Positions 39,448-56,033 of a stretch of 64,000 nucleotides of DNA are shown piece after piece. The notes beneath the pieces are model-generated. The model made no database searches, was not told where the DNA came from, and saw only the letters and a list, made by a program, of their open reading frames with translations. Location of the stretch: the sequence record MK817115.1, one strand, 5' to 3'. A program made the translations under genes and the position numbers. Each line of letters opens with the position of its first letter. Position 1 is the first letter of the stretch.

Positions 39448-39458
39448 TTTAATCTTTT

Positions 39459-40905: not shown

Positions 40906-40920
40906 TTTAGTTTATCCTAT

Positions 40921-40946: not shown

Positions 40947-40969
40947 GTGTTGTTAGTACTGCAAAGTTA

Positions 40970-41374
40970 TTAGATAACCTGGCGGCGTTTACTGTATACT
41001 GTTACACGGTTTCCTTTACGGTCATGACGGATCTCTTTCTGGTTACGAATCAGTTCACTTGGACGCTTAAGGTTTGCCAGGTGATCCGCGTGAGTCCATG
41101 CATTTGCGTTAACTGTAACTTCAATATCAGAACCTTTCAAAAAGTCATCTTGAGCGTTCAGTACTTCAGCCAGTTCTTGAGCTTGCTTTAGTTCTGCTTC
41201 AGTAAGTACAGGCTCAGGTGAATTCACAATATCAGAGATCTCTTTGAACTGTACCGCCCAGCGTTGTCCTTTCGGTGCATCTTTGCCCATGTCTTTAAAT
41301 GTTTCACCTTCTTCACGAGCAACGATGCGAGCTTGTTCACGGGTAGCGAAGAATTTAGTAATCATGGTGTACAT
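40970..41374 (-). CDS. early hypothetical protein, paralog of 52987..53253
   Basis: FATREQARI...FKDMG...DRKGNRVTVY. Confidence 0.85.
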   Translation of the reverse strand: MYTMITKFFATREQARIVAREEGETFKDMGKDAPKGQRWAVQFKEISDIVNSPEPVLTEAELKQAQELAEVLNAQDDFLKGSDIEVTVNANAWTHADHLANLKRPSELIRNQKEIRHDRKGNRVTVYSKRRQVI

Positions 41375-41464
41375 CCTATTAGTTAAGTTAATTAGTACTA
41401 CAAGTTAGAGTCTATTATAAAGTACTATCTGGGCAATGTCAAATAGTACTTTAAATGGATTCTA

Positions 41465-41788
41465 TTACATGTCTTTTTTACGTTTTACATCGTAGTAACG
41501 AACTGTAATTTCTTTGTTGATCTCATCCTCAATTCTGTGTAGTACTTTCTCTTTCGGGTTGAAACCTATTACAGTTTCTTTAATGATCTCCAAGCCCGTG
41601 TATTCGCCTTGTGTACCGTAACCGTAAGTAAAGGTTTCATGTCCCAGGTCTTCCCAGCGGTCACCAATCAATGCAGACACGTAGCATGAGTGGTAAGTAT
41701 TGCCGTGGCTATCAGTCCACCGATTAACTTTAATGTCAAAGGAAGTTACAATTTTCATTTCTACTTTCTGGGCAAGGATCATAGTCAT
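41465..41788 (-). CDS. early hypothetical protein, paralog of 47657..48001
   Basis: RW...GNTY...F.YGYG...DVKRKKD. Confidence 0.85.
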   Translation of the reverse strand: MTMILAQKVEMKIVTSFDIKVNRWTDSHGNTYHSCYVSALIGDRWEDLGHETFTYGYGTQGEYTGLEIIKETVIGFNPKEKVLHRIEDEINKEITVRYYDVKRKKDM

Positions 41789-41875
41789 TTTAATTTCTCT
41801 CTTTTTGTTAGGAAGGGAACCATTCCCCTCACTTGATGTAAACTATTATACAGTACTAAGATACTTTGTCAATAC

Positions 41876-42151
41876 TTAAGTATTGTAAATGTCGTGAATA
41901 GTGATAAAGTTTTTACGACCGTAAACATGTAAATCAGTATCAATGTAGTGCTTATCAAGTACATCCTCGACGCTTAAAGCCGTGTCGTGAATATCTTCAT
42001 AGAATTGTGGATCTACAATCTTACTTAAATCATCCGGCGTTAACTTATCATTGAGCCATTGCACCGCCTGGATATCTGCATCACGTTTCCAGTCTTCCAG
42101 GTTAGTAGTCAGTACTTGCTCGATTTCGTTAGCTGTCAGTAGAATCCGCAT
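41876..42151 (-). CDS. early hypothetical protein (acidic)
   Basis: 91 aa behind class A cassette. Confidence 0.8.
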   Translation of the reverse strand: MRILLTANEIEQVLTTNLEDWKRDADIQAVQWLNDKLTPDDLSKIVDPQFYEDIHDTALSVEDVLDKHYIDTDLHVYGRKNFITIHDIYNT

Positions 42152-42240
42152 TTTAATTTCTCTCTTTGTTAGGTGGGGAACTATTCCCCACTTGATGTAA
42201 AATATTATACAGTACTAAAAACTATTGTCAAACTATTTTA

Positions 42241-42441
42241 TCAAATTGTTTCCCATTTCATGTTACCCGCTTTACGCTGTGAAACAGGAATAAACATGTT
42301 ATTAATGTTACTAATATAACCGACCTGTAAGTCACGCTGTGAACCATACGCCCGACTTGCTGCATTTTTAGCACCGCGTTCTGATTTATAAACGCCGCTG
42401 GATACTGTAAAGCCTACTACACCGAAAGTAAAATGTTTCAT
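42241..42441 (-). CDS. early hypothetical protein
   Basis: 66 aa with promoter and GAGG RBS. Confidence 0.8.
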   Translation of the reverse strand: MKHFTFGVVGFTVSSGVYKSERGAKNAASRAYGSQRDLQVGYISNINNMFIPVSQRKAGNMKWETI

Positions 42442-42492
42442 TTTGTATTCCTCTTTGTGGTTGATGTAAGTATTATACTCGTTTAATTTCTA

Positions 42493-42643
42493 TTGTCAAA
42501 CTATTTTATCAGGGGAGGTTTTCGTATGTCTTACTCCTGGACTACTTAACGGGGTTACTTATTTCGTTCCCCGTCCTGATGTAAAACATTATACTTGATT
42601 CTAAGTACAATGCAAGTACTTTTTAAAAATAGTTTTCAGTACT
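42493..42643 (-). repeat. ORF-less ~150-bp module (copy 1), candidate sRNA
   Basis: Near-identical to 52299-52451. Confidence 0.75.
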
Positions 42644-42670
42644 TGATAGTACTAGCCACCAGCATATAAT

Positions 42671-42751
42671 AGATACATTTATGCACCCTGTGGGTTAGAT
42701 TGTTTCTATGCATATATAATAGCAAAGGGACTGACCGGAGTCAATCCCTTT
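42671..42751 (-). promoter_or_regulatory. class B unit
   Basis: Hairpin 42724-42751; TTGACT-17-TATTAT; motif 42683-42694. Confidence 0.8.
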
Positions 42752-42762
42752 TTTAAATCTTT

Positions 42763-42912
42763 TTAAACTTGTTTTGGGTTGCGATATGTGATAGCGTTCG
42801 GGTACATTTGTTTAATGTTATTCCATGCCTGGTTAACATTGTAACCACTTGATCGAATCAGTTGGTTACTTCCTACGCCCTGAAACACTACTTCGAATAA
42901 GAATTCTTTCAT
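42763..42912 (-). CDS. small early protein (49 aa)
   Basis: Hand-translated MKEFLFEVVFQG...; ATGA-coupled. Confidence 0.65.
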   Translation of the reverse strand: MKEFLFEVVFQGVGSNQLIRSSGYNVNQAWNNIKQMYPNAITYRNPKQV

Positions 42913-43079
42913 GCTGCAATCCCCTCTGATTTACCTTTACGCCAGGCGTTAGCCAGTTCATTACGTTGCCATACATCCAATGCAATGTATAGTTTAGCAG
43001 TATCCCCTTTAGGGTATTCGCCAGTAGTGCCTAACCGATAAAACAGATCTTTCAGTACTGATAATTCTACTTGGATCAT
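42909..43079 (-). CDS. small early protein (56 aa)
   Basis: Hand-translated MIQVELSVLKDL...; AGGAG RBS. Confidence 0.65.
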   Translation of the reverse strand: MIQVELSVLKDLFYRLGTTGEYPKGDTAKLYIALDVWQRNELANAWRKGKSEGIAA

Positions 43080-43185
43080 TGTATTACTCCTGATTGTGTT
43101 AGTACTTCTACGATGGCATGAATGATCATAAGTACAGCTAACACAACAATCATCGGATTCATTTGCATAAGCTGTACTCCTTCTA

Positions 43186-43398
43186 TTAATCTTTCAGCCA
43201 ATGATCTTGAATGAATTTTTCACAGAATCCCTGTTTCATAGATTCTAACAGGCGTTCACGGTGAGCGGCGGCATATTGCTCAGTACTATGCGTTACGCCA
43301 GGTTGATAACGTGAAACACCGTCCGGTCCGATATATTGAACATCCCACGGTTTTTCGTTAGTATCAGACCATTTACGAACGATTAGTTGACCTTGCAT
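43186..43398 (-). CDS. early hypothetical protein
   Basis: 70 aa behind class A cassette. Confidence 0.8.
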   Translation of the reverse strand: MQGQLIVRKWSDTNEKPWDVQYIGPDGVSRYQPGVTHSTEQYAAAHRERLLESMKQGFCEKFIQDHWLKD

Positions 43399-43483
43399 GT
43401 TTCTTTCCTCTTAGTGGGGAGAATCATTTCTCCCCTTCATGTAAACTATTATACAGTACTATAATCTATTGTCCAGTACTTTT

Positions 43484-43678
43484 TTACAGTTTATGAATCA
43501 ATTCTTTATCTAAGCGATAGCGTACATTATTAATGGTAACAGCATTATTTTTAATGCTACGCTGTACTGGCCCACCAGCAATAACAAACGTTGCTTTATT
43601 ACCCCGAACAATGATAGCACTACCAGGATTGCCAAAATCATCTTGTACTAAAATACTTGATAAGTTTTCCATTTTCAT
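43484..43678 (-). CDS. early hypothetical protein
   Basis: 64 aa behind class A cassette. Confidence 0.8.
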   Translation of the reverse strand: MKMENLSSILVQDDFGNPGSAIIVRGNKATFVIAGGPVQRSIKNNAVTINNVRYRLDKELIHKL

Positions 43679-43750
43679 TTCCTCTTAGTAGGGGAAGACG
43701 TTTCCCCTTGATGTAAGTACTATAACAGTACTGGAAACTAAATGCAAGTA

Positions 43751-44107
43751 CTACGATAAAATCATGATAGGATATTCACTATCGATCAGTACTTCAAATC
43801 CAAAACTTTCATACCATTCTTTAAGATTAAAGGCGTTATCTTCTCCCGTATCGCATTCTAAAATGATACAATCTGAATCATCGGCGGCATCAATAAAGGC
43901 GTTCATCAATTCCGTACCTTCACCATTACCCCGACTAGCAGGATCAACATAAAGAGAATCAATAAACGCTACACGGTCATAATCAAGATCCGGTGCAATG
44001 ATTCCACGTTTAACAAACCAGTACTGCAATTGTGCTACTTTGCCCTGTACTTGATAGCCAGTGATCTCGCCATTGTCAGTAGTACGCGTGGTATGTTGTA
44101 TTCCCAT
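43751..44107 (-). CDS. GNAT family N-acetyltransferase
   Basis: IDSLYVDPASRGNGEGTELM (motif A), WYESFGF. Confidence 0.88.
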   Translation of the reverse strand: MGIQHTTRTTDNGEITGYQVQGKVAQLQYWFVKRGIIAPDLDYDRVAFIDSLYVDPASRGNGEGTELMNAFIDAADDSDCIILECDTGEDNAFNLKEWYESFGFEVLIDSEYPIMILS

Positions 44108-44170
44108 GATTTCTATCCTCAGTTAAGATATAAAATATTATACACTATCTTTCAGTACTGTCAATACTTT

Positions 44171-44428
44171 TTATCTCATAGATCTATGCCAACAATTACG
44201 CGGATCTCTTTTAAAAGTACTATCATGATCCTCCTGGCAAGTTATGCAATACTTACATCCCTTAACAGCCTGGCGGCGATTCTCAGGGATTTTATCGCCA
44301 CAGTCGAGGCAATGTATCAGTGATTCTATTTGTGCGTTAATTTGCTTTCTAGCGTGGTTTACGGCGGCCTGAATCACTGCGTTAATCTCGTCTTGCTCGG
44401 CCCCGTCTTTCGCGAATCCTACAGCCAT
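44171..44428 (-). CDS. DksA/TraR C4 zinc-finger protein (YbiI-like)
   Basis: MAVGFAKDGAEQDEI...CLDCGDKIPENRRQAVKGCKYCITCQE. Confidence 0.9.
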   Translation of the reverse strand: MAVGFAKDGAEQDEINAVIQAAVNHARKQINAQIESLIHCLDCGDKIPENRRQAVKGCKYCITCQEDHDSTFKRDPRNCWHRSMR

Positions 44429-44625
44429 TATTTTAACTTTTTTCTGTCATTGATTAATGCTTTCAGTACTATACTAATGATTTGCAATGATTCATCAATA
44501 ACTATAAAATTATTTTCTTTCATTAGATGATAGTTACCATTGATATTATATTCTAACGAGTACTGTTTACGTTTAATTTTTGATAATGTTTCTATTTGTT
44601 TTTGTACTGATTTCATGCTAATCAT
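44428..44625 (-). CDS. early hypothetical protein
   Basis: 65 aa, coupled to next gene. Confidence 0.7.
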   Translation of the reverse strand: MISMKSVQKQIETLSKIKRKQYSLEYNINGNYHLMKENNFIVIDESLQIISIVLKALINDRKKLK

Positions 44626-44698
44626 TGTTAAACGTCCTGTAACGCATTCTAACGAGATAAACGGTTTAGTACTGGCATTGTATAGGGTAATGGATTAA

Positions 44699-44724
44699 AG
44701 CCCACCAGCGTTAACCAGTGGGCT
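44699..44724 (-). terminator. terminator, AGCCCAC...GTGGGCT type
   Basis: 7-bp stem; short U-tract. Confidence 0.55.
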
Positions 44725-44730
44725 ATAATC

Positions 44731-44874
44731 TTACATCTTGCGGATAATCTTAACAGTATCTTTCACCGATTTACCGTTTTGCTGACATTGTTCGATCATC
44801 GCGTATTGTTCTGCGGTCAGATCCTCGCCAGTTTTTGCCAGTACTGCATCGATGAATGAATCTAGTGCGATCAT
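44731..44874 (-). CDS. small early protein (47 aa)
   Basis: Hand-translated MIALDSFIDAVL... Confidence 0.6.
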   Translation of the reverse strand: MIALDSFIDAVLAKTGEDLTAEQYAMIEQCQQNGKSVKDTVKIIRKM

Positions 44875-44973
44875 TTTGTTTCTCTCTTAGGTTAAGTTAA
44901 CTACTGTTTATAAAACTTATTATACAGTACTATCAAACTATGTCAATATCTTTAATAGTACTGGTAATATATT

Positions 44974-45153
44974 TTAGCGGTAGTCGTCGTATGCTTTATT
45001 CACCTGGCGAATGTAACTTTCAAAGGCTTCGTCTACCGTTTCATACTCCCGAACATAATCACCATAGGAAACTACATACATCCCTTTTTGATCTTCAAAC
45101 GTCATGATGATAGAATCCAGGCCGATGATTTCAGTTTTTGCGATGATAGCCAT
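44974..45153 (-). CDS. small early protein (59 aa)
   Basis: Hand-translated MAIIAKTEIIGL...; AAGGA RBS. Confidence 0.65.
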   Translation of the reverse strand: MAIIAKTEIIGLDSIIMTFEDQKGMYVVSYGDYVREYETVDEAFESYIRQVNKAYDDYR

Positions 45154-45234
45154 TTTTAATTCCTTAGTAGTGTAGTTGATAAAACTTATTATACAGTACT
45201 ATCAAACTATGTCAATAGTACTGTGATAATATTT

Positions 45235-45447
45235 TTAGTTAATGATAGTCAGTGTAAAATTGTAATCCCCTGCCTGGTATAGTACTTTGTCGCCGAACGT
45301 ACCAACACGTTTCATATTGCAATAGATACCCATAACACTTTTTACATCTTTGATATTCCGAACGCCTGTGATATCCTTGTTGAAATTTTCATGATCAGAA
45401 AATAAAACTTGTTTTGCATTTTTCAGTACAGTGCAGATATTAGCCAT
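45235..45447 (-). CDS. early hypothetical protein
   Basis: 70 aa behind class A cassette. Confidence 0.8.
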   Translation of the reverse strand: MANICTVLKNAKQVLFSDHENFNKDITGVRNIKDVKSVMGIYCNMKRVGTFGDKVLYQAGDYNFTLTIIN

Positions 45448-45540
45448 TTTGATTTCTCTTTGTTAGTGGGGAGAACTATTCTCCCCTTGATGTAACTTAT
45501 TATACAGTACTATAATCTATTGTCAAACTATTTTTTAATA

Positions 45541-45882
45541 TTATTCAAAATCTTCTGGACCGGACTGATAATCATCTTCACCGTATGCACTTTCTAACTT
45601 CTCGCCAGTGTGATCATCAGTTAGTGAGTCATCCTCATAGTTCACGTCTACGCCCGTGATGTAAAACTGGCTATCGTCTGGATCATTGAAATTAATTTTC
45701 TGAATGTTTACAATAACGGTATTGATGCCCAGGACACCGCCATCAGCAGTTACAAAGTACTGATAGTTTTCACAACCGCCTGTATTGAAACCGTAATTAA
45801 TTTCGGCCCGACCATCATTTAAACGCAGTGCCTGGGCGATGATTTCGTTTTCAAAGTTAGATTGAGCAATTGAGATAGTCAT
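45541..45882 (-). CDS. early hypothetical protein (acidic)
   Basis: YFVTADGGVL...VNYEDDSL...IESAY-type motif; start trimmed to MTISIA. Confidence 0.8.
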   Translation of the reverse strand: MTISIAQSNFENEIIAQALRLNDGRAEINYGFNTGGCENYQYFVTADGGVLGINTVIVNIQKINFNDPDDSQFYITGVDVNYEDDSLTDDHTGEKLESAYGEDDYQSGPEDFE

Positions 45883-46002
45883 GATTCGTTTCCTTATTAC
45901 CAGGGGAAACCGTTTCCCCTCTCGATGTAAAACATTATACGCCAATTGAGATAGTTTGCAAGTACTTTTTAAAAATAGTTTTCAGTACTCAATACTTATA
46001 TA

Positions 46003-46091
46003 ATAGATACACTTATGCACCCGGTGGGCTAGTGAGCTATCTCTCAATGAATATATAATAGCAAAATGGCTGACCGAAGTCAACCACTTTT
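46003..46091 (-). promoter_or_regulatory. class B unit with compensatory stem changes
   Basis: GTGGTTGAC-TTCG-GTCAGCCAT; TTGACT-17-TATTAT; motif 46017-46028. Confidence 0.8.
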
Positions 46092-46096
46092 TTCAT

Positions 46097-46231
46097 TTAT
46101 TTTTTAGCTTTCAGTACTGCCGCCTTTCGCGTCATGCCTTGCTTAATGTACTCCTTTACTTTCGCTTTACGTGCTTTCGCTTTATCTGCTTTCGTTTTAG
46201 GAGTACTGTAAATTAAACCGTTAGGATTCAT
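46097..46231 (-). CDS. small very basic protein (44 aa)
   Basis: Hand-translated MNPNGLIYSTPKTKADKAKARKAKVK... Confidence 0.55.
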   Translation of the reverse strand: MNPNGLIYSTPKTKADKAKARKAKVKEYIKQGMTRKAAVLKAKK

Positions 46232-46317
46232 TTAAATCACCATAAAGAATAGATAGGTTACTAACAATGCCGCGATCAATGCACCGATCACCGCTGAACT
46301 GTAATAAGCTAATGATT

Positions 46318-46470
46318 TCATTTTTTAGCCTGGAAGTAATGTTTAATTTGTGCGGCGGTCAGTGCACAATTACGCAGGAAGTTTTCTGTATAACTGCGGC
46401 GAGTACTGAAAGAGAATTGACCTTTGCCGTTACCGATAGTAACATCAAACCGAGCGTTGTATTGTTTCAT
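46318..46470 (-). CDS. small early protein (50 aa)
   Basis: Start trimmed to MKQYNARF. Confidence 0.7.
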   Translation of the reverse strand: MKQYNARFDVTIGNGKGQFSFSTRRSYTENFLRNCALTAAQIKHYFQAKK

Positions 46471-46551
46471 TTTGTTTCTCCTGTTATTGGGGAGAATCAT
46501 TTCTCCCCTTCATGTAAAACATTATACAGTACTAAAAACTAATTGCAAGTA

Positions 46552-46698
46552 CTATTTTTTAGATTTACGCAAACTTTCTACCATCTCAGGAGTAAGGCCA
46601 GGCGGGTAGGAAACCACTTCATCAACGAAACGTAAAGGGAATACCCCAGCGAAAGGTGAACATGCTTTCTTAGTATTACTCTTTTTTGATGCTTTCAT
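46552..46698 (-). CDS. small early protein (48 aa)
   Basis: Hand-translated MKASKKSNTKK...; behind class A cassette. Confidence 0.55.
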   Translation of the reverse strand: MKASKKSNTKKACSPFAGVFPLRFVDEVVSYPPGLTPEMVESLRKSKK

Positions 46699-46767
46699 TT
46701 CATATTCCTTAATTAGTGGAGAGAATCATTTCTCCCCTTCATGTAAAACATTATACGCGTTTAAAAA

Positions 46768-46977
46768 CTAATTGCAAGTATTATTTGAAAGTAAATGCTC
46801 ATACGCTGCATTAACTACGTTTTCAATAACCGACTGTACAGAAAGATCCCCCACGTCCTGGCTATAGTAGAAATCGCTTACAGTACTATCATCGTATGCA
46901 AATACTTTACCAGGATCTGCATCAATCACATACATATTAACCTTTAAGATGTCGATCTTATCCTGTACAGTAAGCAT
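46768..46977 (-). CDS. early hypothetical protein (acidic)
   Basis: 69 aa. Confidence 0.75.
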   Translation of the reverse strand: MLTVQDKIDILKVNMYVIDADPGKVFAYDDSTVSDFYYSQDVGDLSVQSVIENVVNAAYEHLLSNNTCN

Positions 46978-46982
46978 ATTAA

Positions 46983-47255
46983 TTAACCTTTTAAGTACTG
47001 GCTTAAGTAGTCTTGTTGATCTTCGGTGATTGCAGCCATCTTCCCTAGTACTGGATTGATGATATAATCCCCTGTAACGTCCTGTAACGCATTCTCAGGC
47101 GGTTTAACGGCTGGGGTAGCCATAGCCATTGCCTGGACTTGTTCGACGCTGTAACGCTCATAAAGGCGGCATTCTTCCGGTGTTAACATAGCATCAGTAC
47201 GCTTCATCGGTTTAATGATGCTTTCGATCTCATTCAGTACTTGATTAACGTTCAT
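46983..47255 (-). CDS. early hypothetical protein
   Basis: 90 aa. Confidence 0.75.
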   Translation of the reverse strand: MNVNQVLNEIESIIKPMKRTDAMLTPEECRLYERYSVEQVQAMAMATPAVKPPENALQDVTGDYIINPVLGKMAAITEDQQDYLSQYLKG

Positions 47256-47306
47256 GGTATAATCCCCAATATAAGCGGCCTAAATCGACCGCTAACGATG
47301 TTTTGA

Positions 47307-47576
47307 TTAATAGGTGTATGGTTGACGCTCAAACAATGAATAGACGTTATACGCCCCGCTTATGGGCTTCGCTGGTAAATCAATTTTATATTGTTCACGC
47401 TTAAAGATAATAAAACGGCAATTGTTTTTAACATCAAAATTGATTGAACGTTCCAGGAGTTTACCATCGTGCACAAATACAAGATAACCGCTCGCTACTT
47501 GTTTTGTAGTACTGGTTGCAACCATAGACCGCCGAACATGTGTACCTGCATCAATTAAAGTACTGATATTTTTCAT
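47307..47576 (-). CDS. early hypothetical protein
   Basis: 89 aa. Confidence 0.75.
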   Translation of the reverse strand: MKNISTLIDAGTHVRRSMVATSTTKQVASGYLVFVHDGKLLERSINFDVKNNCRFIIFKREQYKIDLPAKPISGAYNVYSLFERQPYTY

Positions 47577-47656
47577 TATACTATCTTCTTAAGTTAATTT
47601 AATTTCTTTCCCCTATGCAGACACTATATCAAAGTATCTGCATAAAGTAAAGCTAA

Positions 47657-48001
47657 TTAAAGATCTTTTTTGCGTTTAACATCAGTTACCGAACTGTAAA
47701 CAGTGATATTATTGTCACGGCAAAAACGGGAAAGATAAGAACCGCGTAAAAACTCTTTATCTTCCATATTAATAACCTTGCTAAATTCTTCCATTGCTAC
47801 AGTGTCAAAGTGATCCCCGTATCCATATTGGAACGGCACGTTTACTACTTCAATAAAATTACCATCAATTTCTACGTCTACACTTAAAGAGAAATAAGTG
47901 TTACCATATGAAGCCTGGAACCAACGCCGAGCGGCAATATGTACAACTTCAACAGAAGACAGGTTGATATTTTGTTTTGCGATAGTGTTGATATTAGCCA
48001 T
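47657..48001 (-). CDS. early hypothetical protein, paralog of 41465..41788
   Basis: RRWFQASYGNTY...FQYGYGD...DVKRKKDL. Confidence 0.85.
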   Translation of the reverse strand: MANINTIAKQNINLSSVEVVHIAARRWFQASYGNTYFSLSVDVEIDGNFIEVVNVPFQYGYGDHFDTVAMEEFSKVINMEDKEFLRGSYLSRFCRDNNITVYSSVTDVKRKKDL

Positions 48002-48082
48002 TTTAATTTCCTCTTAGTTGTCTTGATAAAATCTATTATGCCAGTACTATCAAACTATGTCAATAGTACTGTGATAATATTT

Positions 48083-48226
48083 TTACTTACTTTTTGCTTT
48101 CTTTGCTGCTTCCACCTGGTCGGCCCATTCTTTACCCCATACTTGTAAATTATAATGGTACTGGCAAAGTGCAACGCCCCGCTTTAAACCAGTAATAGAT
48201 TTTTTACCACATTGACAAGTTTTCAT
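48083..48226 (-). CDS. small putative Zn-binding protein (47 aa)
   Basis: Hand-translated MKTCQCG...LCQYHY; behind class A cassette. Confidence 0.6.
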   Translation of the reverse strand: MKTCQCGKKSITGLKRGVALCQYHYNLQVWGKEWADQVEAAKKAKSK

Positions 48227-48312
48227 ATTAGTTTCCTCATTATCAGGGAGAACCATTTCTCCCCTTGATGTAATGTATTATACTTTATCTGATTTACTTT
48301 GCAAGTACTTTT

Positions 48313-48540
48313 TTAATTTAATTCATCCAGGCAAAGGATACGCTCAACGCCCAAATCAGTTAAACTAATCGACGGCACTTGATAGGTTTCAATGTATGCT
48401 ACACTTGCCCACTGACCGAACTCATTAACGGCCCATTTATCCATTGCAAAATGCAATTCCGCACCTTTCTTATTAGTAATTACAGCAACAGTAGAAGAAT
48501 TGCCAGTAGTACCAGTTACGCGAGTGATTACGATAGCCAT
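48313..48540 (-). CDS. early hypothetical protein
   Basis: Start trimmed to MAIVIT. Confidence 0.8.
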   Translation of the reverse strand: MAIVITRVTGTTGNSSTVAVITNKKGAELHFAMDKWAVNEFGQWASVAYIETYQVPSISLTDLGVERILCLDELN

Positions 48541-48777
48541 TGTTTTAATTCCTTTGATTTGGAAGGAGAACCGTTTCCCCCTCTCGATGTAAAACATTAT
48601 ACGCTAATCTCTTAATCGTGCAAGTACTTTTTATTACTTTTTGCAAAATACTTTAAACGCACTCAATCGCGTTCTTACAGCCTTAACGCCACCAGCTAGG
48701 GCAATGCATCAGATAATCAGTTTAATGCGTTAGAATCGATTCTAGGCGGTGCTGGTGGCCTGGTAAACGTTAAACAC

Positions 48778-48803
48778 AAAAAAGCCCACTTATGCAGTGG
48801 GCT
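48778..48803 (-). terminator. terminator, AGCCCAC...GTGGGCT type
   Basis: 8-bp stem + T6 on minus. Confidence 0.75.
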
Positions 48804-48824
48804 AGTGATTCAGTACTTTAATTG

Positions 48825-49307
48825 TTATGCTTCCACTTTGCGATGAGCTTCGATCCATTCCTCGCGAGTCATACCGCTGGAGTTAATCGCATCCAGTACT
48901 ACCGCAATGCAGTTACCACGCACCGGAATCAGATATTCTTCCCCGTTGTCCAGTACTACCGCTACACGTTTTTGAATCCATTTTTTAGGCTTAGATTCCG
49001 GCTTATCTTCCCCATACTTAACCGCCAGGGCTTTTTGTGCCATCTCTGTAACTACTTCCAGATCCAATCCAACTACTGCCGCCTGAATACTTTCAATTGT
49101 TGCTTGTAGTTCTGCTTCACGGGCCGCCTTTGCCGCTTCAATTTCTGCCGCTTTATTTGCTTGTAGTTCTTTCGCAGTACTATAAGCGATGTTAAAATTA
49201 TTGCGTACCGCTTTCATGGTATCGTTATCCAGATCAGCCAGGATCTCTGCCGCGACGTTAGTTTCATTTGCTACCAGTGCTTTGATGAATGATTTTACAT
49301 TAGCCAT
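48825..49307 (-). CDS. H-NS/MvaT-like protein (coiled coil + C-terminal domain)
   Basis: Ala/Glu-rich helical N-half; C-term LDNGEEYLIPVRGNCIAVVLDAINSSGMTREEWI aligns by eye with H-NS [35 protein letters not shown]. Confidence 0.5.
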   Translation of the reverse strand: MANVKSFIKALVANETNVAAEILADLDNDTMKAVRNNFNIAYSTAKELQANKAAEIEAAKAAREAELQATIESIQAAVVGLDLEVVTEMAQKALAVKYGEDKPESKPKKWIQKRVAVVLDNGEEYLIPVRGNCIAVVLDAINSSGMTREEWIEAHRKVEA

Positions 49308-49510
49308 TTTATAAATCCTCAATTAAAGTTTAGTTTACGTTGGTTAGTGTATCAAAGTTTTCTCGACGTGTCCAGTTTTTCGTTCGACTTACTGGCGGTC
49401 TACTTAGTGCTCCCCGTCTTGATGTAATATATTCTACGCCTTTTTGCGGTAATGTCAACTATTTTTTAAAACTATTTTCAAAGTATCTCAGTACTACGAT
49501 ACTACAAAAA

Positions 49511-49534
49511 CAAAAAAAGCCCACCAGGTGGGCT
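49511..49534 (-). terminator. terminator, AGCCCAC...GTGGGCT type
   Basis: 7-bp stem + T7 on minus. Confidence 0.75.
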
Positions 49535-49540
49535 ATGTAC

Positions 49541-49771
49541 TTAATCAGTAATTAAAACATTAAACACTTTATCATTTAACGTTATGGGTGTACTGCTACC
49601 AGGCTTGAGATCAGTTAGTACACCTGCAATAGCTTTTTCATTGGCGACCTTTCCAGTGTCCAACAGTACTACAGTACTGATAAGATTAACGCTCGTTTCA
49701 ATATCATAATGCACGGCGTTAAGTAGTTGTGTAGTACTGCTTTCGTTAAGTAAAACAATTCGCTTAGTCAT
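49541..49771 (-). CDS. early hypothetical protein
   Basis: 76 aa. Confidence 0.75.
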   Translation of the reverse strand: MTKRIVLLNESSTTQLLNAVHYDIETSVNLISTVVLLDTGKVANEKAIAGVLTDLKPGSSTPITLNDKVFNVLITD

Positions 49772-49792
49772 GATGTTACCCCGTAGTATCTA

Positions 49793-50092
49793 TCAACGGC
49801 AATTAATAACGCCAGTATGAGTTACTTTCTCAGTATCCATAACAGTGACCGAACCGCGTTTAGTACTTGCATCGTAATAAATTGTCGTGCTACCGTTTTC
49901 GTCTTCTTCATGGAACGGGCCGTTTTTAAATGCTTCCGGCTGGATCTCTAAATCCTTTAAAACAATCTCGCCAGTACTTTCATCGGTCATTGCAACAGTG
50001 CACTGAATGAATTTTTCACTACTTACATCTAATGACGCATTAACAGCGAAAGAGGAAACAGATAAAGCCAGGGCGATGATTGCAATTTTCAT
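49793..50092 (-). CDS. putative secreted/periplasmic protein
   Basis: Signal peptide MKIAIIALALSVSSFAVNA. Confidence 0.75.
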   Translation of the reverse strand: MKIAIIALALSVSSFAVNASLDVSSEKFIQCTVAMTDESTGEIVLKDLEIQPEAFKNGPFHEEDENGSTTIYYDASTKRGSVTVMDTEKVTHTGVINCR

Positions 50093-50177
50093 TTGATTAT
50101 CCTTAGTTACCAGGGGGAACCGCTCCCCCCTTGCGATGTAAAATATTATACAGTACTAAAAACTAATTGCAAGTACT

Positions 50178-50414
50178 TTATGATTTTTTATAAAACATTT
50201 CGGCAGTGATATTTTTACCCGTTGGTTGTACTTTATCCAGAATTTTTTGATGTCCAGGGCGACCAAATGAATAAGATCCGTAAACCGTAAACCAGTAGTT
50301 ACCCTCAGTGTTTACATGTACAGCACAATAGGGAACGCCCCGCGATTCATCACTAGTAAAGTGTGATACCGTACCCGTTACATTCGCAGACGTTGATTTG
50401 ATTTGTTCGACCAT
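50178..50414 (-). CDS. early hypothetical protein
   Basis: 78 aa behind class A cassette. Confidence 0.8.
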   Translation of the reverse strand: MVEQIKSTSANVTGTVSHFTSDESRGVPYCAVHVNTEGNYWFTVYGSYSFGRPGHQKILDKVQPTGKNITAEMFYKKS

Positions 50415-50522
50415 TTTCTTATTCCTTAGTTACCAGGGGAACCGCTCCCCCTATGCAAAACATTATACGCGTTTAAAAACTAATAGCAAGTATTTTAATA
50501 AAAAGTATTTGGAAAATAATTG

Positions 50523-50591
50523 TTGACAAGTGCATCCAGTACTGGCATAATTACTACATCAAGACGAAACAGTCACTAACCCACCGGGTGC
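50523..50591 (+). promoter_or_regulatory. class B unit, plus strand, no ORF
   Basis: TTGACA-17-CATAAT; CCCACCGGGTGC 50580-50591. Confidence 0.75.
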
Positions 50592-50621
50592 CGAGATCCG
50601 TCTATTAAATGATTCAGTACT

Positions 50622-50650
50622 AAAAAAAGAAAGGGGATCAATTGATCCCC
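50622..50650 (-). terminator. rho-independent terminator (possibly bidirectional)
   Basis: GGGGATCAATTGATCCCC, strong U-tract on minus. Confidence 0.75.
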
Positions 50651-50656
50651 TCGTTG

Positions 50657-50878
50657 TTATTTTGTAAGGTATAAACAGAAGTCACCTTTATTTGCTACGC
50701 CGCCAGTGTAACGCGAGGAATAGTTAGAAACGTCCTGGACTTCTGCTATTACCAGGGTATCATCATTCAATTCGTCGCAGAAGCAAACGGCTGGATCTTG
50801 TACGCCGATATTGTCGGCATGTTCCCGCATAGATTTAACCAGTGCTTCAAGTTGGGAAAGAGTAGTGATATTAGCCAT
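50657..50878 (-). CDS. early hypothetical protein
   Basis: Start trimmed to MANITT. Confidence 0.8.
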   Translation of the reverse strand: MANITTLSQLEALVKSMREHADNIGVQDPAVCFCDELNDDTLVIAEVQDVSNYSSRYTGGVANKGDFCLYLTK

Positions 50879-50961
50879 TTTATTTTCCTCATTACCAGGG
50901 AGAACCATTTCTCCCCTTGATGTAAACTATTATACAGTACTAAAAACTAATTGCAAGTACT

Positions 50962-51243
50962 TTAACTGTAAGATCCGCAACGGTCGCAGTAGTGCCCCTC
51001 GTCATCGTCAACGAATTGACCAACGAAATTATCTACTTTCGCTTTCAGGTTATTATAATCGTTTTCTACTTCATTTAAACGCTTCTGGTAGTATTCCAGT
51101 GCTTTAAGATATGCCGCATCAGCAGTTTTCTCCTGCATAGCTAAATTCATGCCACGCGTTTCATCGTACAGCCAAAAACCATCGGTGCACTGGCTAATAG
51201 ATAATGACTTGCTTAGTACTGTATAGTTAATTACTTTACTCAT
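50962..51243 (-). CDS. early hypothetical protein
   Basis: GFWLYDETRGMNLAM + coiled coil; start trimmed to MSKVIN. Confidence 0.8.
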   Translation of the reverse strand: MSKVINYTVLSKSLSISQCTDGFWLYDETRGMNLAMQEKTADAAYLKALEYYQKRLNEVENDYNNLKAKVDNFVGQFVDDDEGHYCDRCGSYS

Positions 51244-51301
51244 TAGATAAACCCTCAATAAAGGCGGGAACCATTCCCCGCCATTGTTACAGTACTGAAT
51301 A

Positions 51302-51541
51302 TTACATTCCAACCATTGCAGCACGGATCGCAGTAGTGCTATACTTAAAGCCGTCCGGCGTTGTAGTAGTACCGTTGGCTTTTAATCTGCGGTACATGCA
51401 TTCCGCTGCAATATCTTTAGTTCTACTTTGTGCGATACAACTTTGTGCAAGCCGATACAATGACTCACCGTTATTAATCCATAAGGAAACATTCCAATGA
51501 GTTTTGTTTTTGTGCCCGTTGTAAGTTTTAGTACTAGCCAT
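51302..51541 (-). CDS. early hypothetical protein, paralog of 53339..53578
   Basis: GHKNKTHWNVSLWINN...TPDGFKYSTTAIRAAMVGM. Confidence 0.85.
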   Translation of the reverse strand: MASTKTYNGHKNKTHWNVSLWINNGESLYRLAQSCIAQSRTKDIAAECMYRRLKANGTTTTPDGFKYSTTAIRAAMVGM

Positions 51542-51633
51542 TTTTTTTAATCCTCGTTTGAGCGGGGAACCACTCCCCGCCTCGATATAAAGTATTATAC
51601 GCTTTTAAACTTAGTTTGCAAGTACTTTTTAAA

Positions 51634-52245
51634 TTAATATTCGATTGATTCTACTACGCCATCAATAACATTGAATTGATATTCGTTACCCTCAATCAGT
51701 GCTGTAATGTTTTCAGTAGTGAATTGATCCTCATATGCATTCTCTAAATCACGGTACAACTTGCGGGATAATTCACGAATAGTTTCAGTGAGTAGTTCCT
51801 CAAGCTCATTAACTAACGTTTCTTGTTTTGCGGTTAAATCAGTGTAAGCCGATTCAATGTACCCGCTTACAGTGTTTTCATGCGAGTAGTGGGAGTGAGA
51901 ACGCTTTACACTCATCGCCAAATCATCTTCATTCAGCAGGTGACGGATTGAGCGATACTTAGTTAATGCTCTTACCTTGCGTAAAAACTTCACTGCGTCA
52001 ACGTGGTCAGTACTGATTGATGCACCGTCACCCTGGGACCAAAAACCACTGAATTGTATTTCAGCGTCATTAATGCCATATTCCGGCAATACTGTTTCTT
52101 TATAGTGTTCAATTTCACTTTCAGAAAAATAATCGTCGTTTGAGTTTTTTTCACGTTCCCGAACCAGTTCGATAGCTGACGTTTTTTGTTCTGCGTTCAA
52201 TTCAGAAAAATCCATAACATAAGTAGTAGTAGTGATAGTTTTCAT
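51634..52245 (-). CDS. conserved protein of the family annotated 'antitoxin of toxin-antitoxin stability system' (function unverified)
   Basis: FSGFWSQGDGAS motif; N-term T.Y...EL...K..A; C-term LYR.LE..Y......I..NEY.F. Confidence 0.55.
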   Translation of the reverse strand: MKTITTTTYVMDFSELNAEQKTSAIELVREREKNSNDDYFSESEIEHYKETVLPEYGINDAEIQFSGFWSQGDGASISTDHVDAVKFLRKVRALTKYRSIRHLLNEDDLAMSVKRSHSHYSHENTVSGYIESAYTDLTAKQETLVNELEELLTETIRELSRKLYRDLENAYEDQFTTENITALIEGNEYQFNVIDGVVESIEY

Positions 52246-52298
52246 TTTGTAACCCTCATTCAGTAGTTTATGTAAGTATTATACGCTTTTAAAAACAA

Positions 52299-52451
52299 TT
52301 GTCAAACTATTTTATCAGGGGAGTTTTTCGTGTGCCTTACTCCTGGGCTACTTAACGGGAAGTTACTTATTTCGTTCCCCGTCCTGATGTAAAACATTAT
52401 ACGCCTTTAAACATAGTTTGCAAGTACTTTTTAAAAATAGTTTTCAGTACT
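52299..52451 (-). repeat. ORF-less ~150-bp module (copy 2), candidate sRNA
   Basis: Near-identical to 42493-42643. Confidence 0.75.
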
Positions 52452-52467
52452 GAATAGTAAAAAGGTA

Positions 52468-52640
52468 TTGACAGCACTATCCAGTACTGGTATAATATAC
52501 CCCATGACAACAGCTAACCCACCGGGTGCACAATTGTAACTGTACTAAACTACTTTTTCTATAGATACACTCCCGCACCCTATGGGCTACGGCTTATCTG
52601 CCAATGAATACATTATGCCAGTACTGACAAAATAAGTCAA
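52468..52640. promoter_or_regulatory. convergent pair of class B promoters
   Basis: Plus TTGACA-17-TATAAT with motif 52518-52529; minus TTGACT-17-CATAAT with motif 52575-52586. Confidence 0.8.
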
Positions 52641-52670
52641 TACCGGCAATTGTAAAGATTTGTAAACTAC

Positions 52671-52901
52671 TTATACTGCAATCGCGTCCAGGCTATAATA
52701 ATAATAAGTGCCGTATTGGTGTACTTTATTACCTTTTATTTCAGTACTGAATGAATCCGAACGATTGGCATATGATGTTAATTTATAGTACTTTACTTTA
52801 CTAATACGTTGCCATACACCGCAGATCCGCTGTAAGTAAGTAGTTTTATTTGTGGTAGTATCTTTTACGGCTTTCAATTCGATCATATACATAGTGGTCA
52901 T
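52671..52901 (-). CDS. early hypothetical protein
   Basis: 76 aa behind class A cassette. Confidence 0.8.
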   Translation of the reverse strand: MTTMYMIELKAVKDTTTNKTTYLQRICGVWQRISKVKYYKLTSYANRSDSFSTEIKGNKVHQYGTYYYYSLDAIAV

Positions 52902-52986
52902 TTTATTACTCCTTGCTTTAGTGGGGAACTATTCCCCACCTGATATAAAGTATTATACGCGTTTAAACTTAGTTTGCAAGTACTTT

Positions 52987-53253
52987 TTATTCAAGTACTG
53001 CGATCTTTTTAATACGGTACACGGTCACGCGGTTGCCCTTTCGGTCGAGCTTTATTTCTACCACTCGACGCGATACACTATCAGGACTTTTCAACGCCGC
53101 TAACCAGTACTGTAATGATCTGGCGGTACTACGCTTTACAATGGCCCAACGTTTACCACGTTCCGATTGTACGCCCATATCTTTAAACGTTGCCCCGTCC
53201 TGGCGTGCGGCGATCCGAGCTTGTTCACGCGTCGCAAAATACTTAATATTCAT
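52987..53253 (-). CDS. early hypothetical protein, paralog of 40970..41374
   Basis: YFATREQARI...DRKGNRVTVY; start trimmed to MNIKYF. Confidence 0.85.
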   Translation of the reverse strand: MNIKYFATREQARIAARQDGATFKDMGVQSERGKRWAIVKRSTARSLQYWLAALKSPDSVSRRVVEIKLDRKGNRVTVYRIKKIAVLE

Positions 53254-53338
53254 GCTGTTGCCCTTATCGTTGGTGTATGAATAAAACACTATTATAAAGT
53301 ACTATCGCAAAAAATGATAGTACTTTAAATAAATTCTA

Positions 53339-53578
53339 TTACATTCCAACCATTGCAGCACGGATCGCAGTAGTGCTATATTTGAATCCGTCCGGTGTTT
53401 TATCTTGTCCAGTCTGTTCTAAAAATAACATCATATGACGGGCCGCATCATTACGATTAGTATTGGCGGCAATAAAGTCCTGGGCCAACCGGTATAATGA
53501 TTCATCGTTATTAATCCAAAGGCTTACATTCCAATGAGTTTTGTTTTTGTGACCTAAGAACATTTTTGATTTAGCCAT
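53339..53578 (-). CDS. early hypothetical protein, paralog of 51302..51541
   Basis: GHKNKTHWNVSLWINNDE; start trimmed to MAKSKM. Confidence 0.85.
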   Translation of the reverse strand: MAKSKMFLGHKNKTHWNVSLWINNDESLYRLAQDFIAANTNRNDAARHMMLFLEQTGQDKTPDGFKYSTTAIRAAMVGM

Positions 53579-53671
53579 TTTTTTAATCCTCTTATATAGT
53601 GGGGAACTATTCCCCACCTGATGTAAAACATTATACGCTTTTAAACATAGTTTGCAAGTACTTTATTAAAC

Positions 53672-54034
53672 TTATTCGTAAATTTTGCCACTGTCAGCCC
53701 ATACCAGGAAACGAGGCATATTATCCCATGCATCTTGTTTTAAATTTAAACCGTGTAATACTTCTGTACTTTCCATTCCTGGTACTGGTTTACTATACAC
53801 CGCAAATAGTTCACCCATATACTGATAAGCCATCGTTAAATCACTGGCGATCATCTTATGGATCATCGCATCAAGCATCACGGTAGCGGCGTATTGTTCA
53901 CGCTTAAGCGGTAACATTGCAATAAGTTCCCGATAAGCTGAAATGTGAATTTTTACCGTTTCAGCCGGAAGACCTTTCATCTCTTCACGGAAGTTAACCA
54001 GGTTAGCAATAATTTTATTGATTTGAGTCGCCAT
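53672..54034 (-). CDS. first gene of the early region, hypothetical
   Basis: Behind class A cassette; start MATQIN (or MKT at 54043). Confidence 0.8.
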   Translation of the reverse strand: MATQINKIIANLVNFREEMKGLPAETVKIHISAYRELIAMLPLKREQYAATVMLDAMIHKMIASDLTMAYQYMGELFAVYSKPVPGMESTEVLHGLNLKQDAWDNMPRFLVWADSGKIYE

Positions 54035-54397
54035 CGTTTTCATCTCTCTTACAGTGTAGCGGGAAGTGTTCCCGCTCTCGATGTAAAACATTATACGCTT
54101 TTAAACATAGTTTGCAAGTACTTTCTACATGTACTTTTAAAATAGTTTTCTTTCTATATAGGAGTACTATTATTCAGTACTGCAACCATCCAGGGGAACT
54201 ATCTTTCTATATAGTAGTACTATTATTCAGTACTGAATCAATCAACCAAATCACTACTACACCCCGTAAAACGGCCTCAGACGCATTCTAACGCATTAAT
54301 ACACCCAAGCTATACATTTGCACCATTCCAATCATTCCAGGGCTTTACGGGCCGTTTAAACGCGTTAAATTATTTTCAATTATTTTGTTTTTAGGTA

Positions 54398-54580
54398 TTG
54401 ACTCAGTACAGAAAAAGCGTATAATTACTATATAGACGCGAGAAAGCGGAAACCCCAGAGGGTGCGGAATTACGCCCAAAATTCAAGATATAAAAAAAGG
54501 ATACACTCCCGCACCCTAGCAGGTAAACGCACTTTCTCAGTACTGAAATATAGTACCATAGTCCGGCCCAGGATAGCAAG
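54398..54580. promoter_or_regulatory. second convergent pair of class B promoters
   Basis: Plus TTGACT-16-TATAAT with CCCAGAGGGTGC 54454-54465; minus TTGCTA-18-TACTAT with degenerate motif ~54511-54522. Confidence 0.65.
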
Positions 54581-54612
54581 CAAATTAATTAAAACTTTTT
54601 TCATCCAGGGTA

Positions 54613-54680
54613 TTGCTTTATTTTTCCAGTACTGTATAATAGTTCCATCAAGTCGAGAAAGACTCAAGCCCACCGGGTGC
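54613..54680 (+). promoter_or_regulatory. class B unit, plus strand
   Basis: TTGCTT-16-TATAAT; CCCACCGGGTGC 54669-54680. Confidence 0.7.
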
Positions 54681-54737
54681 ATAGTTACGCCCAAAATTCA
54701 GTACTAGATTATTTTTTAAAAATATTCATCCAGGCGG

Positions 54738-54766
54738 TTGACATTGCCCCCAGTTTATAAGATAAT
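54738..54766 (+). promoter_or_regulatory. sigma70-type promoter, no ORF downstream
   Basis: TTGACA-17-GATAAT. Confidence 0.6.
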
Positions 54767-54863
54767 GATTCCAGATTCAGAAAAATCTAACTCCAGATAC
54801 TGCGGGGAAACTATCCCCACGCGGTAGGGGAACTATTGGAAAAAACAAAATAAAATTTTGATT

Positions 54864-55015
54864 TAGCCGTCTATACTTCCAGACGTGTAACCATCTAGCC
54901 GTTTAGCCGTCCAAACGTCTAGCCATCCAGCCCTCCAGAAATCTAGCCGTTTAGCCGTCTAGATGGATAGCCATCTTTACTTCCAGACTTCTGGAGGGCT
55001 AGACATATCTACGTC
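54864..55015. repeat. degenerate tandem octamer array (19 units, YAG(C/A)CNTC)
   Basis: TAGCCRT at 54864, 54896, 54904, 54920, 54944, 54952, 54968; all offsets are multiples of 8. Confidence 0.85.
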
Positions 55016-55377
55016 CAAAATCCACCCAGGGTAACTACGCCCAAAATCCGTCAGTACTATACCATAGATCTATCTTTTGAAAGGGAGTATTCAGTACTGC
55101 CATCATAGCCCTCACTATGTTACCCTAGGAGGATGAAGACTATCATGTAGTACTGAATACTGTTAGAGGGAATCCACCAGCACAAGCTGGTGGCATAATG
55201 CTTTAGATTAAAATCAGTACTGACACCATTCTGTTAATATCAGTACTGTTATTACGATTTTCATATGAGGTTCAAAAAGATGTACCACCACAGGAGGAAC
55301 TATCTTTTCTGTACTGTCTCACGACAGGAGGTAGAGTAAATGAATTGTTCGCAGCAACTCATCACCCTATGTAGAAC

Positions 55378-55405
55378 ATTATACAGTACTGAATCATAAT
55401 GTCAA
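55378..55405 (-). promoter_or_regulatory. class A-type promoter, no ORF downstream
   Basis: TTGACA-16-TATAAT-GTTCTACAT. Confidence 0.65.
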
Positions 55406-56033
55406 TAGCTTTCTTTCATTATTCAGTACTGATATTCTTGAGAACTACCCGACTACAAACATCATTATATCCCACAAATCATAAACGTCCCAACGTAAAT
55501 TTCAACTTTCGAAGATCCAACTTTTATTTCATAGGTACTCCAAAATTTTTAGGATCGAGATTTAGGATGGAGTACTAACCAACTTTTTGCTGGAGCCTCA
55601 AGGGGTAATGGAATTTTACCCCGAAGGGTAAAGGGGTAATTGAAATTAAGGTGAAAGTAATAATTCAGTACTAATCATTGCGTGATTACTTTTGATTACA
55701 TTTGATGTAATTTGAAAAATGGAAAAGGAGCTTGGAAACTACAAAGTACGGCAGACTTCCTCTGCCTACTTAGTGGCATATCAGTACTGAATCCTTCCCG
55801 TGCATTCTTGAGCATTCTTGTCTATACTAATCAGTACTGAATCATATATAATCATTCTGTGATTCTACGGTGCTCATATAAATGTTTATATATGATTACT
55901 TATGACTACCTATGATTACGGGGTTTAGCCTGGGGAGAATCCTAGTGATCGCATTTGTCCAGGCTGAATTTTAACAATTCGCCTGTACATAAAGGTTGTT
56001 CACTAGGAGCTTCCCCTGTCTCTATGTGTTTAA

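Follow-up and report, generated by a model that had tools for sequence, protein, structure and literature searches.

Close to one end of the genome of Escherichia phage vB_EcoM_phAPEC6 (phAPEC6), a 352.6-kb jumbo myophage of the genus Asteriusvirus, we found an array of 19 contiguous 8-bp units that matches the operators of the Escherichia coli repressor MetJ. The DNA that was analysed, called the window here, is a stretch of 64,000 bases corresponding to positions 288,599-352,598 of record MK817115.1, with 0 mismatches over its length; coordinates are those of the window unless another record is named. The array (54864..55016, assigned to no strand) is defined by its sequence, its period, its conservation, and its match to MetJ boxes, and arrays of the same type recur in unrelated phages. 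As judged from these sequence comparisons, it is probably a cooperative loading site for host MetJ and its corepressor S-adenosylmethionine (SAM), used as a terminus-proximal element. In the literature searched, there was no description of met-box arrays in phage genomes or of a link between MetJ and a phage array, and the octamers as text match primers only.

A strict array of octamers

An earlier, sequence-only reading of this DNA had listed 19 consecutive octamers from 54864, and the sequence is exactly as written there. The first 12, in order, are TAGCCGTC, TATACTTC, CAGACGTG, TAACCATC, TAGCCGTT, TAGCCGTC, CAAACGTC, TAGCCATC, CAGCCCTC, CAGAAATC, TAGCCGTT, and TAGCCGTC, and the 19 units run without gaps and in a strict 8-bp register over 54864-55015 (152 bp). 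Seven TAGCCRT sites were said to lie at multiples of 8. They do, starting at 54864, 54896, 54904, 54920, 54944, 54952, and 54968, which are offsets 0, 32, 40, 56, 80, 88, and 104; the chance of one common phase for seven sites is (1/8)^6, or ~4e-6. The array was detected by Tandem Repeats Finder with periods of 8, 16, 24, and 32. The one inverted CTGGAGGGCTAG that had been noticed is present at 54991-55002 and is included in an imperfect inverted repeat in the right-hand part of the array (54926-54961 against 54968-55003). A 26-bp A/T-rich tract (54838-54863) abuts the array on its other side. This is the sole such site in the whole 352.6-kb phAPEC6 genome, and 0 copies of the array were found among the 5,426 E. 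coli genomes searched.

The unit had also been likened to a "class B" motif, and this likeness proved to be superficial. The TAGCCRT sites elsewhere in the window all read TAGCCAT, and almost every one is the ATGGCTA start codon of a minus-strand gene in reverse complement, with the complement of a Shine-Dalgarno sequence just beyond. Since nearly all of these TAGCCAT copies mark gene starts, the kinship with a promoter-associated motif fails.

The units match MetJ met boxes

MetJ is a ribbon-helix-helix repressor whose dimers bind adjacent boxes side by side, with SAM as corepressor. The E. coli protein binds tandem 8-bp met boxes with an optimum of AGACGTCT, and at least two adjacent boxes are needed (PMC4239095, PMC3413123, PMC3228920, PMC3274233). 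The metF operator, with five boxes, is cited as the large case (PMC3274233). The E. coli host carries metJ. When the phage array is read one base rightward (54865-55016), which is the met-box register, its units are AGCCGTCT, AGACGTGT, AAACGTCT, AGACTTCT, and similar boxes, and all of them are co-oriented.

A plain consensus scan was calibrated on E. coli K-12, where it recovers the metBJ, metF, metA, metC, and metE/R operators (2-5 boxes, 4-7 matches each). For the phage array, the scan gave 110 matches out of 152, which is 13.7 standard deviations above the window mean, and all the top-ranking positions in the window were inside the array. A matrix was also made from 20 natural K-12 boxes. 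With it, the phage boxes had a mean of 5.77 bits, compared to 5.95 bits for the natural boxes (4.89 bits when one operator at a time was left out) and a background of -4.75 bits.

The array was then scored by a published test, the symmetrised matrix and thresholds of Augustus and Spicer (PMC3228920, Table 3). In this test, a box must reach at least a quarter of the consensus score and a site at least the consensus score, 12.58 bits (PMC3228920). Fifteen of the 19 boxes pass, with consecutive passing runs of 8 boxes (59.1 bits) and 5 boxes (37.9 bits), and the total for the array is 115.7 bits compared to 17-30 bits for the K-12 operators. None of five genome shuffles exceeded 19 bits, and in 512 kb of control DNA scores above 30 bits were found only at genuine or pre-selected met-box sites. 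For a random repeat unit, with all 8 of its rotations allowed, the chance of scoring as high as the main unit was 0.0015. Both the adjacency expected of a MetJ operator, at least two contiguous 8-bp boxes (PMC4239095, PMC3228920), and the published weight-matrix score are thus present in the array. Positions 1, 2, 4, and 5-8 of the phage boxes follow the published matrix, second-choice bases included, but position 3 does not, and the variability profile among relatives differs as well.

Like the K-12 operators of metA, metBJ, metC, metE/R, and metF, the phage array is built of tandem contiguous 8-bp boxes related to AGACGTCT, and under both the natural-box matrix and the published matrix its box quality is equal or better. 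The two differ in length, with 2-5 boxes in the K-12 operators and 19 in the phage (17-25 in its relatives and up to 28 in an Aeromonas phage). The phage array is also distinguished by an enrichment for C at position 3 and T at position 5 and by the common orientation of all its boxes.

The array lies near a genome end mapped in relatives

The phAPEC6 paper describes headful packaging without fixed ends, which was deduced from the large terminase alone (PMC7247149). Several Asteriusvirus records, though, were deposited as linear sequences that are ~20 kb longer than the others. The two ends of the G17 record map to window positions 35695 and 55770. The records of fEgEco12, vB_Ec-M-J, BF17, CRJP21, ELP-22, E9.1, WPEC3, and WPEC5 end at exactly 55770, and the other end of fEgEco12 maps to 35695, so that 9 of 9 Asteriusvirus records with a terminal repeat end at 55770. 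For fEgEco12, a direct terminal repeat of 20,993 bp was found by PhageTerm and confirmed by restriction digests (PMC13070987), and for G17 a redundancy of ~20 kb is visible in the coverage (PMC6563267).

The mapping from these nine relatives implies that phAPEC6, too, has fixed ends and a direct terminal repeat, which would be 20,076 bp long (35695..55770, no strand; 324293-344368 in MK817115.1) and of which one collapsed copy is present in the circularised record. Since the relatives end at 55770, the array would lie 755-906 bp inside the physical genome end. The sequence-only reading had placed it near the genome end, and the mapped ends of the relatives bear this out. Around the array is a 1.68-kb leader (54092..55770, no strand) that reaches from the genome end to the first gene of the terminal repeat (53672..54091, minus strand; in fEgEco12, g01 begins at 1689) and has no conserved open reading frame (ORF).

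The array is conserved in Asteriusvirus

Conservation was followed in 16 Asteriusvirus genomes, phAPEC6 and 15 relatives. All 16 retain the array, with 17-25 units and with length changes only in multiples of 8. The indels within the array in 10 close relatives were +8, -8, -16, and -16 bp, and no others were seen. In the 6 more-diverged relatives, which include EJP2 with flanks that are only 71-77% identical, every TAGCCRT of the array is in a single 8-bp phase. Because the indels are unit-wise and the single phase persists in diverged relatives, the 8-bp unit is real in evolution. Across the 16 genomes, the boxes score 5.2-6.0 bits each under the natural-box matrix, and in EJP2 the individual boxes have turned over while box quality was retained.

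Similar arrays occur in unrelated phages

A BLAST search with the array alone returned ~40 Asteriusvirus records and ~40 unrelated phages, and further IMG/VR contigs were located through two-box patterns. T7 was not among the BLAST matches. In other terminal-repeat phages the arrays lie 40-930 bp from the ends, where for some phages the start of the record or contig was taken as the physical end. The Autographiviridae podophages PGT2 and phiKT have 9 boxes; those of PGT2 are within a terminal repeat of 260 bp, at 38-109 bp from the end. Three T5-like phages carry them as well. Vibrio phage Pontus has 17 boxes downstream of its last gene, at positions 468-603 of a terminal repeat of 8.6 kb. Aeromonas phage AhSzq-1 has the longest array seen (record positions 108799-109022), with 28 boxes that all pass and together score 221 bits; it lies in a non-coding gap of ~950 bp, and the T5-type genes for DNA transfer, A2 and A1, are ~2.8 kb away. 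Nine boxes are present in Providencia phage PSTCR5 (mean of 9.5 of 12.6 bits) and in a 118.5-kb contig, with means of 9.5-9.8 bits for the two, and in the contig they are at 631-702 from its start. Finally, the jumbo phages Serratia BF, XbC2, and GAP32 and contigs of 357-378 kb have 15-17 boxes at 650-930 bp from the record start, a distance that is unreadable for GAP32 and the 357-kb contig. With record starts taken as ends, the asymmetric boxes point the same way with respect to the nearest end in phAPEC6, PGT2, XbC2, and Serratia BF and apparently the opposite way in Pontus.

The consensus of 245 boxes pooled from 18 arrays is exactly AGACGTCT. At positions 5-8, the second-commonest base in the pooled boxes is the one that the published matrix predicts, and the frequencies are close at positions 6-8. 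The named hosts are Escherichia, Salmonella, Klebsiella, Serratia, Erwinia, Yersinia, Cronobacter, Providencia, Vibrio, and Aeromonas. Enterobacterales, Vibrionales, and Aeromonadales are the orders reported to carry MetJ (PMC4239095), and the named hosts all belong to MetJ-carrying orders with one exception, that of XbC2. Since one unit is common to phages of three families whose hosts bear MetJ, a shared host factor is the simplest explanation, and the end-proximal arrays in three unrelated phage groups suggest that position matters. A broader proposal is put forward more tentatively: terminal-repeat phages of enterobacteria, vibrios, and aeromonads, among them podophages, T5-like phages, and jumbo myophages, may share a widespread cis-element that recruits MetJ to the first or last few hundred bp, either for a function at the genome end (entry, protection, or packaging) or to soak up this SAM-sensing repressor and thereby induce methionine and SAM synthesis in the host.

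Two related viral contigs from IMG/VR carry sites of 5-6 tandem met boxes that include two perfect copies of AGACGTCT and score 48-51 bits. In one of them (L055, 14584-14631), the boxes are directly upstream of an operon of small genes; in the other (L056), they are at 435-474. Neither contig matches a GenBank phage, and these sites may be MetJ-controlled phage operons. Arrays of just four boxes, upstream of a gene for a small membrane protein, occur in two IMG/VR contigs of 68 kb and are too short to be interpreted.

The array and the packaging cut

The array had been proposed to be a terminase or packaging signal. As stated, with a small terminase or other packaging protein of the phage reading the octamers and directing the cut at the repeat boundary, we consider this unlikely. 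The cut site at 55770 is 755-906 bp from the array, and the end-proximal position of similar arrays in other terminal-repeat phages would also suit such a role, but the cut site has conserved signals of its own (55656-55916). A conserved hairpin, GGCAGA-cttcc-TCTGCC (55750..55770, with the stem-loop at 55750-55766; no strand), ends 4 nt before the terminus at 55770. Repeat analysis found a module of ~60 bp with 10-bp-phased TGATTAC repeats just inside the terminus (55656..55716, plus strand) and a second copy of it just outside (55833-55916). The two modules are conserved; the sequence that separates them varies, as does the DNA immediately beyond the repeat. The hairpin and the TGATTAC modules (55640-55930) are likely to be the recognition and cut signal of the terminase and are better candidates than the array.

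The geometry and distribution of the units also argue against a packaging protein as their reader. The contiguous 8-bp period puts successive sites on different helix faces, which differs from the arrangement of known pac and cos repeats. The packaging proteins of podophages, T5-like phages, and jumbo myophages are presumably unrelated, and a unit that is present in all three is more readily explained by a host factor common to them than by a protein specific to one phage. A small terminase was not identified. With better candidates at the cut site itself, only a helper form of the terminase idea survives.

A precedent for such a helper is lambda cosB, where a single IHF site adjacent to the nick site acts as an architectural helper for terminase. 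The likeness is that a host DNA-binding protein has a site in terminus-proximal phage DNA. A single IHF site at the nick is, however, different from a 152-bp array that is 755 bp from the cut and whose link to terminase would be hypothetical.

Evidence against MetJ and the case for another binder

Several observations weigh against MetJ as the protein that reads the array. In the phage boxes, position 3 is split between A (51%) and C (48%), whereas 87% of natural half-sites have A there, and position 5 is more often T than it is in cellular sites. Across the Asteriusvirus relatives, box positions 3, 5, and 8 are the most variable and positions 1, 6, 2, and 4 the most constrained, which is unlike the profile of natural operators. 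Given this variability and the position-3 profile, the true binder could be another protein with related specificity. The context is also unusual since the array overlaps no promoter and no methionine gene is adjacent to it, unlike every known MetJ operator. As for conservation, the entire 1.7-kb leader is about as conserved as the array, and therefore conservation alone does not single the array out.

The distribution of the arrays has exceptions too. Phage XbC2 was reported on Xanthomonas, whose order is not listed with MetJ, and has 16 boxes at record positions ~647-775. Its array is nearly identical to GAP32-like arrays, and XbC2 is in the same genus as Cronobacter phage GAP32. Either the host assignment, the MetJ reading, or the MetJ dependence of the element needs checking. 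A met-box array is absent from the left terminal repeat of T5 (first 11.5 kb) and from the first 3 kb of the Klebsiella jumbo phage fENko-Kae01, and therefore the element is not universal.

One alternative is that some other protein with a MetJ-like 8-bp mode, encoded by the phage or by the host, binds the array and that the likeness to met boxes is convergent. This could be a protein of a centromere or organiser of the ParG or omega type. Long contiguous runs of 7-8-bp units bound by polymerising ribbon-helix-helix dimers are found in the ParG boxes on TP228 and the omega heptads on pSM19035. Long arrays of this kind are typical of ribbon-helix-helix centromere-binding proteins, and the design of contiguous short units is common to them and the phage array, with a different unit sequence. 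ParG is discussed in PMC3413123. The phage dialect of C at position 3 and T at position 5 is a further argument for this alternative.

Nevertheless, another binder seems quite unlikely. Pfam searches of the whole phage for MetJ, Arc, ParG, Omega, RHH_1, and ParA/CbiA gave no match above threshold, although such searches for ribbon-helix-helix proteins are insensitive on orphan phage proteins, which is a further point on the side against MetJ. The only sub-threshold matches were one to RHH_1 inside a 756-aa frame and a P-loop match for CbiA/ParA, so the cognate ribbon-helix-helix or ParA gene that would accompany a centromere was not found above threshold by these insensitive searches. Moreover, unrelated phage families would all need one and the same protein, and the pooled consensus is exactly that of MetJ. 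MetJ loading is the explanation that we prefer. The array passes the published thresholds for a MetJ site many times over and is outside the context of an operator, and therefore we regard it as a variant of the met-box operator and not as a member of the met regulon.

The non-coding leader and its other elements

The leader is 84-99% conserved across the genus and contains many direct and inverted repeats. In a consensus scan, the array was found to lie between two converging strong promoters of the host type, both of them predictions. The predicted sigma-70 promoter on the minus strand (55378..55405) is a perfect consensus (TTGACA, 16 nt, TATAAT; 12/12). It is directed from the end to the array, ~355 bp upstream of the array and 365 bp from the genome end. 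The sigma-70-like promoter on the plus strand (54738..54766; TTGACA, 17 nt, GATAAT; 11/12) is invariant in the relatives and directed into the array from ~100 bp away, with a small hairpin (54802-54822) between the two. A second near-consensus promoter on the plus strand is at 54398. There is no ORF for more than 1.2 kb downstream of the minus-strand promoter, and a 19-codon ORF with a strong Shine-Dalgarno sequence is found at 55340-55399 on the strand opposite to that promoter. A palindromic core, CAGTACTG, occurs more than 12 times in the leader (54160-55440), in most cases immediately before a -10-like hexamer (CAGTACTGTATAAT at 54629 is one), and seems to belong to the spacer or extended -10 of phage early promoters on both strands.

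Two Chi octamers form an inverted pair (CCACCAGC, 4 nt, GCTGGTGG) at 55174..55193 (no strand), 577 bp from the end. The pair is conserved in 8 of the 10 relatives checked and is annotated as a terminator in G17. The whole phAPEC6 genome has 27 copies of Chi (GCTGGTGG) compared to ~1.9 expected. Eleven are in the terminal repeat, 9 on the minus strand and 2 on the plus strand, and the plus-strand set includes the pair at 55174-55193. In our reading, the minus-strand copies are oriented to meet RecBCD entering from the 35695 end and the plus-strand copies to meet it on entry from the 55770 end.

Cumulative GC skew over the whole genome reaches its global minimum at window position 55541 (phAPEC6 344139), 230 bp from the terminal-repeat boundary. 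Next to it is a block of minus-strand paralog genes (56034-60256). The skew of this block is positive (its coding strand is C-rich), the reverse of that in the minus-strand genes on the opposite side.

Other explanations of the array

The array could also act at the level of RNA, in a non-coding transcript from the flanking promoters that might, for instance, be a structured RNA or act as a sponge for a protein. The strong predicted promoters on both strands do read into the array, and both strands fold better than shuffled sequences (z -4.75 and -6.9). These fold scores, though, follow from the near-palindromic units and the one inverted repeat, and there was no match to an Rfam family. The central stem is imperfect in most relatives, which have A and not C at 54933, and the arrays elsewhere are in different transcriptional contexts, such as downstream of the last gene in Pontus. 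An RNA element is, therefore, very improbable.

Replication-origin iterons, which had also been suggested for the array, are more improbable still. The A/T-rich tract at 54838-54863 adjoins the array, and the skew minimum at 55541 is nearby, but this minimum is confounded by the minus-strand paralog genes with their atypical composition. No DnaA boxes were found in 54-56 kb, the units are 8 bp and contiguous and not 17-22 bp in helical phase, and there is no adjacent initiator gene. Of the features of an iteron origin (phased 17-22-bp iterons, DnaA boxes, an A/T-rich element, and an initiator gene), only the 26-bp A/T tract is present, and the claim of an origin signal did not hold up. Equally hard to credit is a functionless, slippage-prone short tandem repeat, which would explain changes of unit number in multiples of 8 as the product of replication slippage but not why 17-25 units are kept in 16 genomes, why box quality is maintained despite the turnover in EJP2, or why unrelated phages have independently come to carry this type of box near their ends.

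Possible roles of MetJ at the phage end

If MetJ reads the array, host MetJ-SAM dimers would occupy successive boxes and contact one another as they do at cellular operators. The result would be a continuous cooperative filament of ~15-19 MetJ dimers coating 152 bp of phage DNA. What such a filament would do is less firmly indicated than the binding, and two roles can be considered. In the first, an end-proximal nucleoprotein structure would aid a process at the DNA end by holding, ratcheting, or shielding the first DNA to enter. The strong predicted host-type promoters and correctly oriented Chi sites lie beside the array. A variant of this role is the helper form of the terminase idea, in which MetJ would be an architectural helper as IHF is at lambda cosB, a possible model for this first role. 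In the second role, the copies of the array made by replication would titrate MetJ, and methionine and SAM synthesis would be derepressed. Titration would suit the phage because phAPEC6 is said to encode two DNA methyltransferases, which use SAM (PMC7247149). The models for Dam-type (PF02086) and N6_N4 (PF01555) methylases gave no match in the phage.

The closest architectural parallel that we found is in T5, whose left terminal repeat has a 1.66-kb non-coding repeat region at its end with paired DnaA boxes that were proposed to act through a host protein (Davison, bioRxiv 10.1101/866236). As in "repeat region 3", the injection stop signal of T5, there is in phAPEC6 a conserved non-coding stretch of ~1.7 kb, dense in repeats and palindromes, at one end of a long direct terminal repeat of small early genes. 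The phAPEC6 leader is thus the large conserved non-coding repeat region at a repeat end that is expected of a T5-type injection stop. The elements themselves are unrelated. Those of T5 are 15-bp DRD units and DnaA boxes, whereas the phAPEC6 leader is without DnaA boxes (54-56 kb), and neither T5-type DnaA box pairs nor DRD/DRE/IRC/IRD repeats were found in it. Nor is Asteriusvirus known to inject its DNA in two steps, as the T5-type model has it. T5 was considered as a direct homologue and rejected, since its DRD repeats are unrelated and its first 11.5 kb have no met-box array.

T7 offers a looser comparison. It has short-repeat arrays, SRL and SRR, just outside its terminal repeat. They resemble the phage met-box arrays in that short repeats lie close to the ends of a terminal-repeat phage, but the T7 unit differs. 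In addition, the met-box type of the phiKT-like podophages is inside the 260-bp repeat, in contrast to the T7 arrays, which are outside the repeat.

These results have several implications. The phAPEC6 record, previously described as that of a headful packager without fixed ends, is corrected by the mapped ends of its relatives. Annotation pipelines miss arrays of host-factor sites in phage non-coding DNA, of which this may be an example. If MetJ does bind, the array would be the largest known MetJ site, with about four times the score of any operator on the host chromosome, and it would be on a virus. The recurrence of such arrays would then be a clear case of unrelated phages converging on one host transcription factor at their DNA ends, in a structural or a regulatory capacity. 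It would provide a handle on how phages tune the methionine and SAM metabolism of their hosts and on the function of the conserved non-coding DNA at the ends of terminal-repeat phages, a question that goes back to the work on the T5 injection stop.

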